From the NCBI GenBank assembly GCA_038496445.1, contig JALMLS010000027.1, positions 1 to 64,000 of the forward strand: DNA of 64,000 nucleotides. The letters run 5' to 3'. The position numbers and the translations under genes were made by a program. This document shows, piece after piece, positions 16,152 to 22,478 of the stretch. Origin of the DNA: Trichosphaerium sp. ATCC 40318 (Eukaryota > Protista > Tubulinea). The notes under the pieces were generated by a model. The model worked only from the letters and a program-made list of their open reading frames with translations. It was not told the origin of the DNA and ran no database searches. The first letter of the stretch is position 1, and each line of letters starts with the position of its first letter.

Positions 16152-16553
16152 ATGACTGACGCTAAAGCCAAGTCCCAATTACAACAAAATAAAGAAAATG
16201 CTATCGCATTCTACAAAATGGCGTATGAAGGAAACCCATCAAAGGCCGTTGAATTATACGTAGACAAAGTGTATATTCAGCATAACCCTCTCGTTGGTAA
16301 TGGTCCGGAGCCTTTTATTCAATACTTTGACCGTATGCAACGCGAATACCCTAAAAAGTCGATCGAATTCGTTAGATGCATTGGAGAGGGCGATTTAGTG
16401 GCCTTACATACGCACCAAACGTGGCCGGACAACGTAGAATATGTCACGATGGATTTTTTCCGTTTTGACGACAAAGGCAAAATCTGTGAGCACTGGGATT
16501 CTATGCAAGAAGTACCAAAAGTTAAATCAAAAAACGGAAACACAATGTGGTAA
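16152..16553 (+). CDS. Intronless SnoaL-like/NTF2-fold protein of bacterial type
   Basis: NKENAIAFY...YIQHNPLVGNGPEPFIQYF...EGDLVALH...MDFFRFDDKGKICEHWD; 133 aa in a single exon. Confidence 0.9.
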   Translation: MTDAKAKSQLQQNKENAIAFYKMAYEGNPSKAVELYVDKVYIQHNPLVGNGPEPFIQYFDRMQREYPKKSIEFVRCIGEGDLVALHTHQTWPDNVEYVTMDFFRFDDKGKICEHWDSMQEVPKVKSKNGNTMW

Positions 16554-16812
16554 AGAAACTGTAGCCAAAAAACTCAATAAACATCCTTCAACAAAAAAGA
16601 GACCACGTTTTTTTTTTGTTCTTGTTAGATTCTTGGTCTTATTGATATTCGTATCAGTTTTATAAGCACCAATATAGGCGCTCTAGCAGTCTACTTGTTA
16701 ATGACCGCAATTGTTCTTTTTAATGCTTACGCTGCTAATGGAATGCAATTCTTTAAAAAAAATTCTTCGGCCATTTTAGAGTCCAGTACAGTTAATTATA
16801 CACTCGCCTACT

Positions 16813-19800
16813 TTATTCTAGTACACTATGAACAGATTTCGCAGGTTCTATTGTTTGTAATACAACAACAGCATTACTCACCACTTTAGGTGTCATGAGC
16901 AATCTTTCCATCTTTGCCGCTATTGAAGAAAAAAATCAGTTCCATTATTTGCTTTTCATTGTAGTAAAAGGAACTTACATTTTTGGATCGGTTCTACAAT
17001 CGGCATATCTTCCATTAAGTCAGTAGCATCAGGTGCTACATATAACTTAAGCTCAGGCCTAATTTTAATTGTTGTTAATACATTAATTCAAAATGAAGGG
17101 CACGTGCTTATATTTCGTTATCAATAAAGCTAGAGCATTATTATCTCCTTGCTCCCACCAATAAGGGATAGGTATTAATGTGATACCTAAATTGCACAGT
17201 TAACACAATCTTATGTTGGCCTCAAAGGAGTTTTGTTTGGTTTCATAATCCTTACCATTTTCGTAGCACAATGCTGCTTTTTCTGAGTCACGGCTTTCTT
17301 GCATACTTACAGGTCCAAAAGCGAACATGTTATCAATATAATGATGCTCTCCTTGATATTCAAAAGCAATATTAAGCCCAGGAATGAAAGCATCAAACGT
17401 AATATGAGCTTTACTAGAAGATCCTCTCAAATATGCAACGTATTCTTCTATAACAGTGGCTTTTGGTAAAATCTCTTTAATAGAGGATAAAACAGACCTA
17501 CAGCAATGATTAAACACCTTCAATAATTCGAAAGAACGAGCCCTTGACAACATATCAAGAGGCTTTGTTTTTCTCATAAAATCCAACTTACCACTGCGCT
17601 GCTCGCTTCTTTCGGAGTGTAAATTCATTGTAATCCCAATCTACATCTGGGTATATCTTTCCAAGAATATGTGGCCATACAGGCATTAATCCACCTCCAC
17701 CAGCTTTAAAAATTTGGCCGCATGATATACGATACCAATCAGTTGGTTTTGATATCTGTAATAGCCCAGAAATTGATTCAAGAAAAAATTTAACATTTTG
17801 CCTTTTCTTCCACCATCCTTGAGGAACGCTACCTGTCAAAGAACAACGTGTTAGCAATATATACTAAACTATTTCCATACCAAATTTCCAAGGAAGAAAG
17901 GTATACTGAGGATAAATTCTGACTAAAAGTCGCACCAAGGAACCATTAAAATGCCTGATGAAATGTCAGTTGGCTGGTGACTAAAACTCGTTTACCCTTT
18001 CAATAGACTTACACCACCAGCTTCCTCTACATCTTGTACTGTCATACAATACCAGTTATCAAAAGTCATCACTCTATTTACAATAGCTACCTAAATACAA
18101 GTGAGCATGTGGTACGAAATGTTGTACGTACTTTTGTCAAAAACCTTTTTTGATATTTTACATTCCCCCAAGAGTTCCGTGGCAACATGCCTTTTAAAAT
18201 AAATTTACATAATTCAAATAGGTTTATAATAATACTTACCGAAGCGTAGGGGGTCCCACCAGCGATCAGGATACACTCTCTCCAAGAAGGTAGGTAGAGA
18301 TGTATAGAGTCTTAACAAAAACAAGTTAAGTTGTGTTTAATTGTAGATCGTCATCTCACGTTTTAAGACCCTTCCCTCCCAATCCAGTTACCTGAGTGTA
18401 AGTAACACGATACCAGCCATCCAATGTTTCGATATCAAAGTGCTCCTCTACCTGAGCAAAGCGTAAGCTAAAGCATGAAGTCTTTATGATATTTTGGGTA
18501 AATGTTCTTTACGTCTCTTGTGTAGCGTTTGAGGTTTTCATCTTTCTCCCAAAAATTATCTGGTAGCCTCGCTGAAAACAAAACACGTCATCCATTAACA
18601 GCTACAGAATAAATGCTTACCAAATTTCCATGGAATCCACGTGTAATTTGGGTACATAGCACTCAAATAATTTTTCAAGTCATAATCATACAAGCTAATA
18701 AACAGGTGAATATGAAGATGACTGAAATGGAACAATATAAAAAATTGTACTGTAGTAAACCCTTGCCACCGTATTTTTCGAATTCGGATGTCCTAACATT
18801 ATACCATTCTTCTTGCTTTCGGATATTAAGCTCAGCCTCCATCTAACAAAGGTTCAACAAAAAAAAAATACTTTTTGTATATTTAGTACATTTTTAAGGA
18901 AAGCCTGCTGTTGTTTTAATGTTTGCCAATATGCCTTGAAGTTACTTGAAAACTGCCAATTAGTCCATGATTGTTCTGGATAAAACATTCGTAGAACAGC
19001 AACCATTGATCCATAAAGTCTACATTACATTAAATATCAAAACCAAAAAAAATTACCTTATAAGTCCAGCTCCTCCTTGTGCGCTGAATTCTTTGGTTGA
19101 AACGTCAAACCAATCACCAACAGATTCTATTTTCATATCTTTTTCAATCTAATCACAGAGTAAGAACATCATACATAGCGTGCCGTGGTACCCAACGCAT
19201 AAACTCAAGTATTAAATCAGGAGTCCACATTTCATCTGTTTGCTTATCTGCTTAAAGTCAACAGACGAACACAAGAATATCATAACACGCACCAAATTTC
19301 CAGGGTACCCAAGTGACTTCAGGGTAGTAATCTTGAAGAAGCTTGATAATAGAATTGTCATATTTTCTATTCTAACAGTTAATACCAAAAAAAATATCAA
19401 TAAAATAACTTTGAACGCACTCTATGAGGTGCCCACCACCCAGGGTAACGAGATGAGTTGCATTAACATCATACCACTCAACCATATTTTTTATACTCAT
19501 TTTGGATTTGACCTGTAAGTTTAGCCTGAGAAAAGCGCCCAACTGAATTGTTTTTCACATACATATTTCAAGAATTTTTTAACAATAACAGGATTATCAA
19601 AGATTTTAGGATTAACATCTCTAAACTTCCATAGCAGCCAAGTATGCTCTGGATAAAAATCCCGCAACATCTTGCTTACGGTGTAACCATGTGTACTATC
19701 CCAAAATGAGTAATTGACAGCGGAAAGATACAAGCAAAAAAAAAGAAAAGTATCTACTCTAAAAAGTTTAATCCACCAATGGATATTATCTGCTTTATTG

Positions 19801-20822
19801 ATACGCGATACCAATCATCAACTTCTTTAATACCAAAAAAAGCTTCTGCCTGGAACATTGGTATGATTAGGCTTAAAAAAGATAACCAATAAATCGTGTA
19901 CCTTGAGCAAGAAGTCTGTACGTTTATCTTTAGAGTAAGAAAAAGTAGAAGGATTATATGCTTTACTTCCTCGCTTAAACTCTAGTCTTGTTCGCTCAGA
20001 CATAAAGCGCCATGTAGCCCAATTATGAGAAGGGTAGATTGCTTGTACCATTTGAGCTATAGACCCGAAATGACTGAAAGACAAAGGTGCTGTCAGTCAA
20101 AGCAATAGCCAAGGAAAAAAAAGGAAATTTAGAGTACTTTAAAAATCCTCCACCTCCGAGCGCATGAATGTAACGGTCACTTATGCTATACCACCCCTCT
20201 AGGTTCTTCATATTTTGCTTTTTTTCAATCTACACATGTAATTACAACAAAGGTAGCAATATCAAGTGTACATAATTAACAAAGCTTATCTGACTATCTC
20301 GTGATGACCACGTGGTTTTAGGAGGCGTAGCTTTAAAAAAAGTAGTGAGTAAACAAAACACCTTAAACGGACGATACGAAAGTCCAAAATCATGTGATAC
20401 ATACCAAAACGCCAAAGCATCCAAGATACCTCTGGGTACCATTTCTTTAACATTACATGAAGACCTCCATAATGCCTAGAAGTCTGTAAGACAACATGAA
20501 CAACGTGCAATACAAAAAATGAGCGTACACTAGCAATCCAGTACCACCAGCCTTCTTGATGTTATCAGATTTTATACTATACCAATCCTCAGGACGGGTA
20601 ATGTCGAGGGTGTTTTCAAGCTTTTTTGTCAGTGAAATTACGTAAAAAGTATTGCTGTACCTTTCTAAGGAACTGTTTTCTGTGTGAAACGCTCTTCCAG
20701 CTTTGTCGCTTTGGTTTGACCGTTGGAATTTGTATATTTCGCGTTGTATGCTTCTTAAGTGTTAATTGGCGCGTGTGGTGAGTTTTGAGCGAAGTTCTGT
20801 AACAAACTGAACACATTCGCAT
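16813..20822 (-). CDS. Nine ~70-aa Trp-rich tandem repeats plus C-terminal PD-(D/E)xK/RAP-like nuclease domain; possible mitochondrial presequence; more than 20 introns
   Basis: Repeat consensus W...F...IE..L.I...(D/E/G)WY.V....I...GG.GLL..Y......L...YP...W..WKF...P. C-terminus TFDAFIPGLNIAFEYQGEHHY...RDSEKAALCYENGITLIPIPYWW. The N-terminus is R/K/T/S-rich with no acidic residues. Exact 3' end uncertain. Confidence 0.85.
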
Positions 20823-21059
20823 AAAACACCATTTCTTGGCTTGCCCAATCTACCGTGTACGCGATACGCTATATTCTATGAGCTTTTCGCAAATGTCACA
20901 TATTAACAATCAACACTTTTATTTAACGTACTGAATAATAACCTTAGTGGATCTCACAAGCGATTTTGCACGCCACAGACAACGTGCCTTAAACAAGCCA
21001 TCAAGTTTGCCGCGCTCTTTAAGTTGCGTAATTTTGTTGGTGGGAGAAGCCTGGTACAG

Positions 21060-22478
21060 ATGGATACAATTGCAGGCACTTCAAAGAGCGGCGTAGCAAA
21101 GAAAAAACGCAAGTTTGAAGAAATTGCAACGGAAACGCCCCTGCATATCAGCTACGTCACCAACAGGAACCAAGCCTTAAAAATGGGGCATCTGATCGAT
21201 AATCCGCTCTTATCTGATGTCACATTTTTTGTTGGTACTATTACATCTCTTTGTAATACACCACACGCGAAATAACGATTTAAATAGGTTATGAGAAGAA
21301 AAGAATTCATGCTCATAAAGTTTTCCTTGTGGCTCACTCTGAACCGTTTCATGCGATGTAAGCCATCTAACCATAGTTTGATTATCGTGTCAAATATCTT
21401 TTACAATCTGTACAGGTTTTGTAAAGGATTCTCAGAGTCAACAAAGAAAGAAATTGCGATTCCGAATATTTCAAGCGAAATCTTCCTGAAACTACTCGTA
21501 TATGTGTATACCGGCCAATTACAACTTGCCAAAGGTATGGCGGACTTGGATAGCTAAACAAAAGCAGAACTAACAATTATTTTAAGATGACATGGAATTT
21601 AGCGTCAATCTACTACTGGCTGCCAATCAGTATGCTATAGAGGGTCTAAAAACTATATGTAAACAGCATATAGAAACTACAATGACAAGCGAGAACGTTG
21701 TGACGATCTTGAGTTGTGCAAGGTGAGGAACCTTTTTTTTTTACAAAGTGTTTTTTAAAGCAGTTTGTTAAATCCTCTTAAGCCAACTTAATTCACCGGA
21801 TCTATATGATATGGCATTCGCACACTGTGAAACACACTTAGGAGAAGTCATACAGACGGACAGCTTTCTATGTTTGTCACCTAGCAACATGTTAAAGTTT
21901 GTTCCATCCGGTTAGTAGTTGTCATACAACTCACTCTGCTAATATCTTTGTTTTATCCATCTAGAAAAAATAGATGTCAGTGAAACCAGGCTATTTGAGA
22001 GTGTGTTGAAATGGGGAATAAACCAATTTTACGAGCAGAAAGGGAAAACAATACCAAAAAAAGATTCAAAGAAACGCCACCGGATGGATATTCGTCAATG
22101 GAGTAATGAGGATAAGCAAGAGCTTGCACATATCCTTAAAGATATTATAATACATATAAGGTTCCCTCTTATGAGTAGTGACGAACTCTGGGACTGCGTT
22201 GCCCCTTACGAAGTACGATTTCCGCTATCAAAGATTGTTTGGCATCATACGGGAAAACAAGCTTCTAACTCTTAACCTTCTAGGATGTAGTTGGTAAAAA
22301 CTTACTGGATGAGGCTTTCAGGTATAAGGCACTAAAACACAGAAAGCTACCAGTGTTTGAAGGCGTTAGATATAAACCAAGGTATGTTTTTTATTTTTAA
22401 TTAATTTTGTTACAAAATTATTTAACTGTGCGTAGAGCAAGCAGTCCTCAATCTCAAATCCATCTCATTCGCATGTAA
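21060..22478 (+). CDS. BTB-BACK domain protein (BTBD1/2/3/6-like Cullin3 adaptor)
   Basis: LSDVTFFVG, AHKVFLVAHSEPFHAM, FSESTKKEIAIPNISSEIFLKLLVYVYTG, LLAANQYAIEGLKTIC, SETRLFESVLKWG, HIRFPLMS. Confidence 0.85.

Follow-up and report, generated by a model that had tools for sequence, protein, structure and literature searches.

The described protein closest in layout to the one that we report here is the EDxHD homing endonuclease I-Bth0305I (PDB 3r3p), in which a Vsr-like nuclease stands behind tandem small helical DNA-binding modules. The EDxHD catalytic set comprises a Glu, an Asp that binds Mg2+, a His or Asn, a His that serves as general base and an Asp, and the catalytic residues of Vsr are E25, D51, H64, H69 and D97 (PMC3239194). 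In RAP organellar proteins (FASTK, OPR-RAP, HPR-RAP and mitoribosomal proteins), helical repeats are likewise followed by a Vsr-like domain; these proteins carry an organelle leader and form large nuclear families. In the RAP domain of FASTKD4, an Asn replaces the catalytic His, and the domain was judged inactive by the authors (PMC11879112). Here we describe a spliced gene of Trichosphaerium sp. ATCC 40318, found in a 64,000-nucleotide stretch of DNA (contig JALMLS010000027.1, positions 1 to 64,000, forward strand), which we call the window. The gene spans window positions 16813-20822 on the minus strand and encodes nine tandem repeat units followed by a C-terminal nuclease domain. A helical-repeat array joined to a Vsr/RAP-type nuclease is a known kind of protein; what is new is the repeat module and the fact that it is combined with an EDxHD site that is fully intact.

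With moderate confidence, we read the product as a modular nucleic-acid-targeting endonuclease, whose array binds extended nucleic acid, likely DNA, and whose Vsr/EDxHD domain cuts nearby; import into mitochondria is suggested. According to this model, the nine five-helix units would pack into a rigid array of strongly basic character (net charge +25, isoelectric point (pI) 9.5, compared with a pI of 5.1 for the nuclease), and this array would bind nucleic acid, most probably DNA, over an extended length. The C-terminal Vsr/EDxHD nuclease, with its Asp predicted to bind Mg2+ and its His predicted to act as general base, would nick the DNA or make a double-strand break beside the position of the array, and the basic leader, free of acidic residues, would direct import into mitochondria. 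Four points make a site-directed DNA endonuclease, which may be mitochondrial, more likely in our view than a FASTK-type RNA-processing factor: the complete catalytic set, the ligase fusions of paralogues, the relatives from the DNA world and the parallel with I-Bth0305I.

The gene model, built manually with GT-AG introns and checked by translation, has 26 exons (20822-20661, 20620-20531, 20483-20405, 20330-20272, 20229-20138, 20073-19902, 19849-19758, 19695-19563, 19512-19421, 19366-19293, 19250-19192, 19148-19057, 19019-18890, 18842-18751, 18694-18621, 18571-18513, 18451-18360, 18310-18240, 18190-18132, 18090-17996, 17954-17881, 17832-17592, 17497-17256, 17186-17108, 17058-16979 and 16919-16813) and yields a protein of 896 residues; its bounds are the stop codon and the first ATG downstream of an in-frame stop. 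Because the gene is split by many introns of 37-94 nucleotides, the longest open reading frames (ORFs) of the region reach only 85-142 residues. Transcript contigs of four public runs were compared with window 16700-21000 (4,301 letters). Since contigs of these runs (X1, X2, X3 and X5, from three studies) precisely skip the last eight introns, in 16920-18238, the gene is real and expressed. The 17 introns in 18311-20660 were inferred from GT-AG ends, reading frame and repeat homology, the last of which placed intron 18750-18695; they share the three unit positions and phases of the transcript-verified introns in units 7 and 8. All introns of the model are GT-AG with the exception of one of 49 nucleotides inside the end of the nuclease domain (17059..17107, minus strand), whose 49 bases are skipped in X1 and X2 contigs and for which only a GC...AG reading fits. 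An unspliced X3 contig that spans 20704-20838 fits an exon 1 that begins upstream of the ATG at 20822.

Introns recur in the array at three homologous unit sites, which together span window 17881-20660 on the minus strand. Site 1 lies 12 residues before the core Trp, in phase 0, and site 2 lies 18 residues past it, in phase 2 (phase 0 in unit 1); each is occupied in all eight intron-bearing units. Site 3, which lies 43-44 residues past the core Trp and is in phase 1, is occupied in five of the eight, and unit 9 is the sole unit free of introns. This recurrence indicates that the array grew by duplication of a three-exon unit. The gene, with 25 spliceosomal introns and situated among ordinary host genes, is nuclear.

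The protein is composed of four parts, namely a basic leader, the nine repeat units, the nuclease and a 56-residue acidic tail. All nine Trp-rich cores and trailing motifs listed in the original prediction are found in one spliced minus-strand frame, in units of 74-88 residues that share a DWY / GGxGLL / YPxxxWxxWKF signature. Along the minus strand, these are unit 1 (residues 39-114, 20320..20708, core PEDWY at residue 66), unit 2 (residues 115-202, 19950..20319, LEGWY at 142), unit 3 (residues 203-277, 19611..19949, VDDWY at 230), unit 4 (residues 278-352, 19240..19610, MVEWY at 305), unit 5 (residues 353-426, 18938..19239, VGDWF at 380), unit 6 (residues 427-501, 18561..18937, QEEWY at 454), unit 7 (residues 502-575, 18180..18560, LDGWY at 529), unit 8 (residues 576-651, 17822..18179, FDNWY at 603) and unit 9 (residues 652-726, 17597..17821, PTDWY at 679). 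Spliced contigs cover unit 7 in part and verify all three introns of unit 8. Unit 9 is terminal, degenerate and encoded by a single exon, and among the units of homologues it most resembles the terminal ones.

After each core, the sequence continues with GGxG(L/F)(L/I) and then YPxxxWxxW(K/R/Q)F, the ends of units 7 and 9 being degenerate, and the common pattern of a unit can be written as W...(K)xFL...I....DWYxV......GGxGLL..Y..S....L...YPxxxWxxWKF. Against a profile of the unit that draws on 189 proteins and 800 units, among them the window's own nine, all nine window units score 55-79 bits. Their pairwise identity is only 18-38%, which points to an old, ancient array. The cores are spaced by 74-76 residues, except for 88 between units 2 and 3, unit 2 being 13 residues longer than the others. 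This irregularity may reflect an additional in-frame intron of 39 nucleotides (GTAAAG...CTAAAG; 19928..19966, minus strand), the removal of which would restore the 75-residue period of unit 2 and leave a protein of 883 residues; the unit profile is near-equal for the two versions (65.6 vs 63.4 bits).

The leader (residues 1-38; 20709..20822, minus strand) has a net charge of +9 and a pI of 11.1 and contains neither Asp nor Glu. Acidic residues begin only at position 56, and Lys or Arg account for 15 of the first 60 residues, in keeping with the basic, acid-free N-terminus noticed earlier. The bias extends to the family: in 79 members that start with Met, the leaders contain 20% K/R and 5.5% D/E, compared with 14.8% and 11.8%, respectively, in the rest of the proteins. 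This composition suggests that the leader is a possible mitochondrial presequence and that the protein may be imported into mitochondria. At the other end of the protein, the acidic tail (residues 841-896, pI 4.9; 16816..17042, minus strand) starts with KPELKLYVAPD..., a beginning that is common to the closest homologues P0001, P0004, P0005 and P0024.

The nuclease domain occupies residues about 720-840 (17043..17617, minus strand), as judged from the fold of a homologue and from conservation in alignment A1, which has 91 rows and includes two window exons. The C-terminal motif is present as TFDAFIPGLNIAFEYQGEHHY ... SRDSEK ... GITLIPIPYWW, with the IPYWW strand at 17169-17155. Alignment columns E30, D51, E62, G65, H68, D85 and K88 are 97-100% conserved, and the window protein keeps all of them. 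The candidate catalytic residues are E745 (17448-17446), D763 (17394-17392), E774 and Q776 (within 17364-17350), H780 (17343-17341), and D798 and K801 (within 17295-17278). D763 in strand 2, E774 in strand 3 and K801 fall into columns with 99-100% conservation and supply the acidic and basic residues of a PD-(D/E)xK site. Mapped by order and spacing, E745, D763, Q776, H780 and D798 also follow the E-D-x-H-D order. The D-to-x gap is 13 in the window protein and in Vsr and 12 in I-Bth0305I, and the x-to-H gap is 4 in the window protein and 5 in both others.

An AlphaFold2 model of this domain was made for the target P0005:81-225, a homologue that is 46% identical to window exon 23. With a mean predicted local distance difference test score (pLDDT) of 87.5, it adopts an alpha-beta-beta-beta-alpha-alpha-beta-alpha core of the PD-(D/E)xK, or restriction-endonuclease-like, type. 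In an unbiased structure search of 48,161 representative chains, the Vsr-DNA complex ranked first (Z 9.2) and I-Bth0305I second (Z 9.1), followed by a T. gondii mitoribosomal protein (9g6k_L9, 8.8), NGO0050 (8.6) and the RAP domain of FASTKD4 (9gek, 8.4). The top seven matches are all of Vsr, EDxHD, DUF559-like or RAP type, and generic PD-(D/E)xK nucleases score Z <=6.9; nearly all of the 44 chains at Z>=5 are PD-(D/E)xK nucleases. The match to Vsr covers 117 aligned residues with a root-mean-square deviation (rmsd) of 3.6 and an identity of 10%. Foldseek is led by I-Bth0305I, PvuRts1I and Vsr with probabilities of 0.8-1.0 and weak E-values; for Vsr and I-Bth0305I, the probabilities are 0.99-1.00 and the E-values only 0.017-0.02. 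Fold and catalytic motif thus agree with the expected succession of a tandem helical-repeat array and a PD-(D/E)xK domain of the Vsr/DUF559/RAP kind.

At the level of sequence, the domain stands further apart. Neither Pfam Vsr nor Pfam DUF559 matched window exons or homologues at E up to 10, NCBIfam contained no match for the family, and PDB sequences searched with a profile of the nuclease alignment yielded neither Vsr nor 3r3p, but only a chance match to GCP4. DUF2726 (PF10881, cut-off 24.7 bits) is matched by the homologues P0027 (29.6 bits) and P0086 (28.6 bits), reaches 15-21 bits in other homologues and is not matched by the window exon.

Near-complete conservation of the catalytic positions (97-100%), together with the presence of the same D, E, H, D and K in bacterial and viral relatives, is to be expected only of an active enzyme. 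It bears most directly on the idea that the protein is a non-catalytic scaffold, with an array that binds protein or nucleic acid and a nuclease-like domain that is a structural or binding module only. Some RAP/FASTK proteins do act without cleavage (PMC11879112), and the repeat has no proven nucleic-acid-binding relative. However, the level of conservation in alignment A1, which samples a family of 537 relatives, and in the bacterial and viral proteins speaks against dispensable catalytic residues, and we regard a scaffold as very unlikely.

The resemblance to RAP domains raises a more serious alternative. The protein could bind or process RNA in an organelle, as the amoebozoan equivalent of FASTK, OPR-RAP and HPR-RAP proteins, with an array that reads a mitochondrial transcript and a RAP-like domain that cleaves or holds the RNA, or it could be a component of the mitoribosome. 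We consider this possible, if rather unlikely, and treat it as a serious rival, given that the fold is RAP-like, that the leaders look like presequences and that the family is large and nuclear, with a varying number of units. The nuclease model resembles the RAP domains of the T. gondii mitoribosome (17% identity) and of human FASTKD4 (18%) as well as a Tetrahymena mitoribosomal protein (6z1p_AS, Z 7.8). No RAP proteins turned up in Amoebozoa in a published survey (PMC8190603), and the present family could fill this gap; it may be what that survey missed. In the literature, we found no paper on this family, on DUF4046/PF13255 (a domain family discussed below) or on amoebal RAP-like proteins.

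Several of these points, and some others, weigh against the DNA endonuclease that we favour. The RAP matches are nearly as good as that of Vsr in fold and higher in identity (17-18% vs 10-12%). Among the ESM Atlas clusters, one with 441 fragments, mostly amoebal, has been auto-named 'RAP domain-containing protein'. Factors that bind RNA in organelles classically show just this combination, a large nuclear family of helical-repeat proteins whose leaders look like presequences, and the leader might just as well be a signal for the nucleus. The window copy carries no ligase domain, so that the ligase argument rests on paralogues. Both structure models are of homologues rather than of the window's own spliced protein. 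Finally, the best match of the repeat to a solved structure has a Z of only 4.4, and DNA binding by the array is therefore tentative.

On the other side, Pfam RAP (PF08373) was matched neither by the window nor by any homologue, even at E 10. The full Vsr/EDxHD set is retained, and the very His that is absent from the FASTKD4 site is invariant in the amoebal nuclease family, whereas characterised RAP domains such as that of FASTKD4 have lost the set (PMC11879112). Paralogues are fused to DNA ligases, and in sequence the nuclease comes closest to phage and bacterial proteins that carry DNA-binding modules. The analogy with FASTK, OPR and HPR proteins that had been drawn for this locus therefore holds for the RAP-like fold, and is weakened by the invariant His, the relatives with DNA-binding modules and the ligase paralogues.

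The family and its relatives also support a site-directed DNA endonuclease. When 1.84 billion cluster representatives were searched with exon 23, which encodes 80 residues of the C-domain, 537 relatives were found at E<=0.001, the best of which is only 53% identical. Full-length relatives have the same design, with units followed by the same C-domain; among 153 relatives, the number of units ranges from 1 to 15, with a modal spacing of 75. Two relatives are placed in Amoebozoa by their named sources, Nematostelium and Cavostelium, and ESM Atlas neighbours come mainly from Tubulinea, Discosea and Evosea, with some from Nucleocytoviricota and Bacteria. P0096, P0111 and P0086 have an ATP-dependent DNA ligase domain behind the nuclease (PF01068, 33, 49 and 27 bits, cut-off 26.2). 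Some eukaryotic relatives have two nuclease copies per polypeptide, P0002 and P0003 each consisting of a tandem of two array-plus-nuclease halves. The window itself holds the 3' end of a second family member at 228-1000 on the plus strand, the start of which lies beyond the window. Its nuclease, split by short introns, shows the motifs VDVYVPEINLAIEYQG, GEQHY, ARDAEK and VPIPFTW and is followed by a similar YYKP... tail.

Beyond the amoebae, the same nuclease motif was found by pattern scans in at least 511 bacterial and archaeal loci (one genome per prokaryotic species) and in 52 viral loci (viral contigs). The window C-domain aligns with bacterial and viral relatives at up to 54 bits and 27-45% identity, and their consensus retains D, EYQG, (Q/H)H, RD..K and C. 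Viral proteins carry the nuclease at their C-terminus, preceded by homing-endonuclease-associated repeats (PF18780, 84 bits), treble-clef zinc fingers (DUF4379, 64 bits) or DUF723. One viral protein, L124:4852-6276, in which three or more homing-endonuclease-associated repeats (PF18780, 84 bits) are joined to the same nuclease domain, is a natural counterpart of the amoebal design, built on a different helical module. Some bacterial proteins of 818-863 residues contain two nuclease copies (L076:3778-6366, L080:3901-6354). DWY units were found in none of the 132 bacterial and viral loci examined, and scans of viral contigs with P0115 and P0185 returned nothing. Judged from these sequences, the nuclease is an old, widespread and uncurated domain of the DNA world that habitually stands behind tandem DNA-binding modules. 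As the phage and bacterial relatives use other modules and no DWY units, the amoebal family has supplied a new kind of module.

These relatives also bring up the possibility of a conflict gene, either a nuclease that defends the host by attacking the DNA of giant viruses or of bacteria inside the cell, or a homing-type endonuclease that is selfish or has been domesticated, with arrays that diversify after their targets. P0185 and P0172 are repeat-plus-nuclease relatives on prokaryote-type contigs, and P0185 (669 residues; metagenome sample 3300059473) lies directly after integrase, AlpA, DnaG-type zinc ribbon and AAA_25 genes, an integrase/AlpA/primase-type module typical of integrative islands that carry defence genes. 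Satellite-like islands often hold defence genes in a cargo position like that of P0185. The frequent occurrence of the nuclease in phage contigs that have homing-endonuclease repeats, the predominance of Nucleocytoviricota as the commonest phylum in some Atlas neighbour clusters, and the size of the family, with a second paralogue within the window, would fit as well. Against this, PADLOC defence models matched none of six family members, and there is no sign of mobility, of an intron or intein host, or of target duplication. The 25 spliceosomal introns at periodic old positions and the low identity between units mark the array as ancient and not recently diversified, and the leader resembles an organelle signal. 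A role in conflict therefore seems decidedly improbable to us for the window copy.

In the DNA endonuclease that we favour, the array would bind through a module that is unlike those described. The repeat structure was modelled on three consecutive units of the homologue P0154 (P0154:220-443; 59-row alignment) rather than on the window protein, with a pLDDT of 95.4 and a predicted template modelling score (pTM) of 0.83. Each unit of the model is built of five helices, the longest with 14 residues and the other four with 5-8, and the high pTM of the three-unit model argues for fixed packing between units. The modal period among the 800 units is 75 residues, which differs from the two-helix units of 34-40 residues in PPR, OPR, HPR and TALE proteins. 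The view that the repeat is none of these is thus upheld: with 75 residues and five helices, it also has no match in the PDB or Pfam.

Foldseek found no relative of the repeat model in the PDB (best E 2.2, with annexins and TPR proteins as noise) and nothing in the viral BFVD (best E 0.32). In an unbiased structural search, the peak was a TetR helix-turn-helix superposed on one unit, which at its Z of 4.4 is too weak for helical proteins. Among 16 homologues compared with Pfam, the repeat gave no genuine match above cut-off, and the window ORFs and exons gave only chance-level Pfam matches (FANCA_CTD, DUF592, DUF4857). A Myb_Rap1 match in P0154 that exceeds the cut-off (44 bits) was rejected, since it falls on the YPxxxWxxW segment and, in our view, reflects similar Trp spacing rather than homology.

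The only real structural neighbours of the repeat model are ESM Atlas clusters auto-named DUF4046, which superpose on it with TM scores of 0.57-0.63 and an rmsd of 1.8 Å over 138 residues. A precomputed PF13255 flag is present on some homologues. The nine repeat pieces of the window did not match DUF4046 (PF13255) at E 10, and neither 59 three-unit segments nor whole homologues reached its gathering cut-off of 22.8 bits, the best score being 14.2 bits (P0168). The structural likeness of the models suggests that the repeat and DUF4046 may be distantly related.

Variation among the 800 units is greatest at positions 15, 18, 33, 34, 37, 42, 43, 46, 47, 53, 54, 58, 67 and 68. Those from 33 to 58 lie in helices 3-5 with i, i+1, i+4 spacing, on one face of the helix, as in any helical repeat. 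A TALE-like di-residue was not found among the 800 units, and alignment A2 of the repeats contains no stretch conserved enough for pattern scanning. When the nine window units were compared one by one with the units of seven homologues, no diagonal emerged, and only the terminal units resembled each other; this absence of a conserved unit order provides no support for or against a conserved target. The proposal that recognition is sequence-programmable was not substantiated: there are variable positions on likely exposed faces of helices 3-5, and neither a di-residue code nor a conserved order of units. We nevertheless mention a speculative extension of the favoured model, which we think improbable. 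The units would form a modular recognition array, each of them reading a fixed number of bases via the variable faces of helices 3-5, so that the proteins would be a large family of natural, re-targetable DNA nickases or cutters in amoebae, a few bacteria and giant viruses. The paralogues with ligase domains would then cut and reseal chosen sites in mitochondrial or invading DNA, and the scaffold, made of protein only, would be distinct from those of TALE, zinc-finger and PPR proteins.

Should the array and the Vsr-type domain indeed cooperate, they would represent a fourth natural tandem-repeat targeting scaffold, after TALE, PPR/OPR/HPR and PUF. The scaffold would come already joined to an intact nuclease, and hundreds of diverged copies could be mined for a recognition rule. 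The published view of Amoebozoa as devoid of RAP-like organellar factors (PMC8190603) would have to be revised, and a eukaryotic nuclear family would be tied to modular homing-type endonucleases of phages and bacteria.

The repeat-nuclease gene has neighbours on both sides. An intron-less gene for a SnoaL-like protein of 133 residues (16152-16553, plus strand; Pfam SnoaL_2, E 1.4e-11) converges on it and lies 260 bp from its stop codon; its bacterial look suggests a possible horizontal origin. Upstream, on the opposite strand, ORFs in 21000-22300 (plus strand) contain an LLSDVTFFVG-type stretch, which we read as a putative BTB/POZ-like motif.

Compared with known systems, the amoebal protein shares with RAP proteins the order of helical repeats and Vsr-like domain, and its nuclease fold lies at Z 7.8-8.8 from solved RAP domains. 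The RAP proteins' repeats are, however, two-helix units of 37-40 residues, and the amoebal catalytic set is complete where FASTKD4 lacks the catalytic His and is inactive. Vsr (1cw0, 1vsr) is the best structural match and has the same catalytic order and D-to-x spacing and nearly the same x-to-H spacing, but it consists of a single domain, nicks at mismatches and has a zinc site and intercalating Trp residues, and the identity is 10%. Phage and bacterial proteins such as L124, L109, L082 and L007 possess a homologous C-terminal nuclease, with N-terminal modules that differ from DWY units. I-Bth0305I has two NUMOD/helix-turn-helix motifs and resides in a phage group I intron, whereas the amoebal protein has nine 75-residue units and is encoded by a nuclear, multi-intron gene, and the two nucleases have no sequence-level match. 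Homing endonucleases cut the empty allele, and their genes are found in self-splicing introns, inteins, or mobile or phage genomes, a setting that the amoebal gene does not share. TALENs are engineered fusions to FokI. With TALE nucleases and PPR-nuclease fusions, the amoebal protein has only the concept of a repeat array plus nuclease in common, since TALE and PPR units have 34-35 residues and two helices and the amoebal unit has 75 residues and five. In place of the TALEN-like layout suggested by the original prediction, the layout of EDxHD homing endonucleases is the closer analogue.

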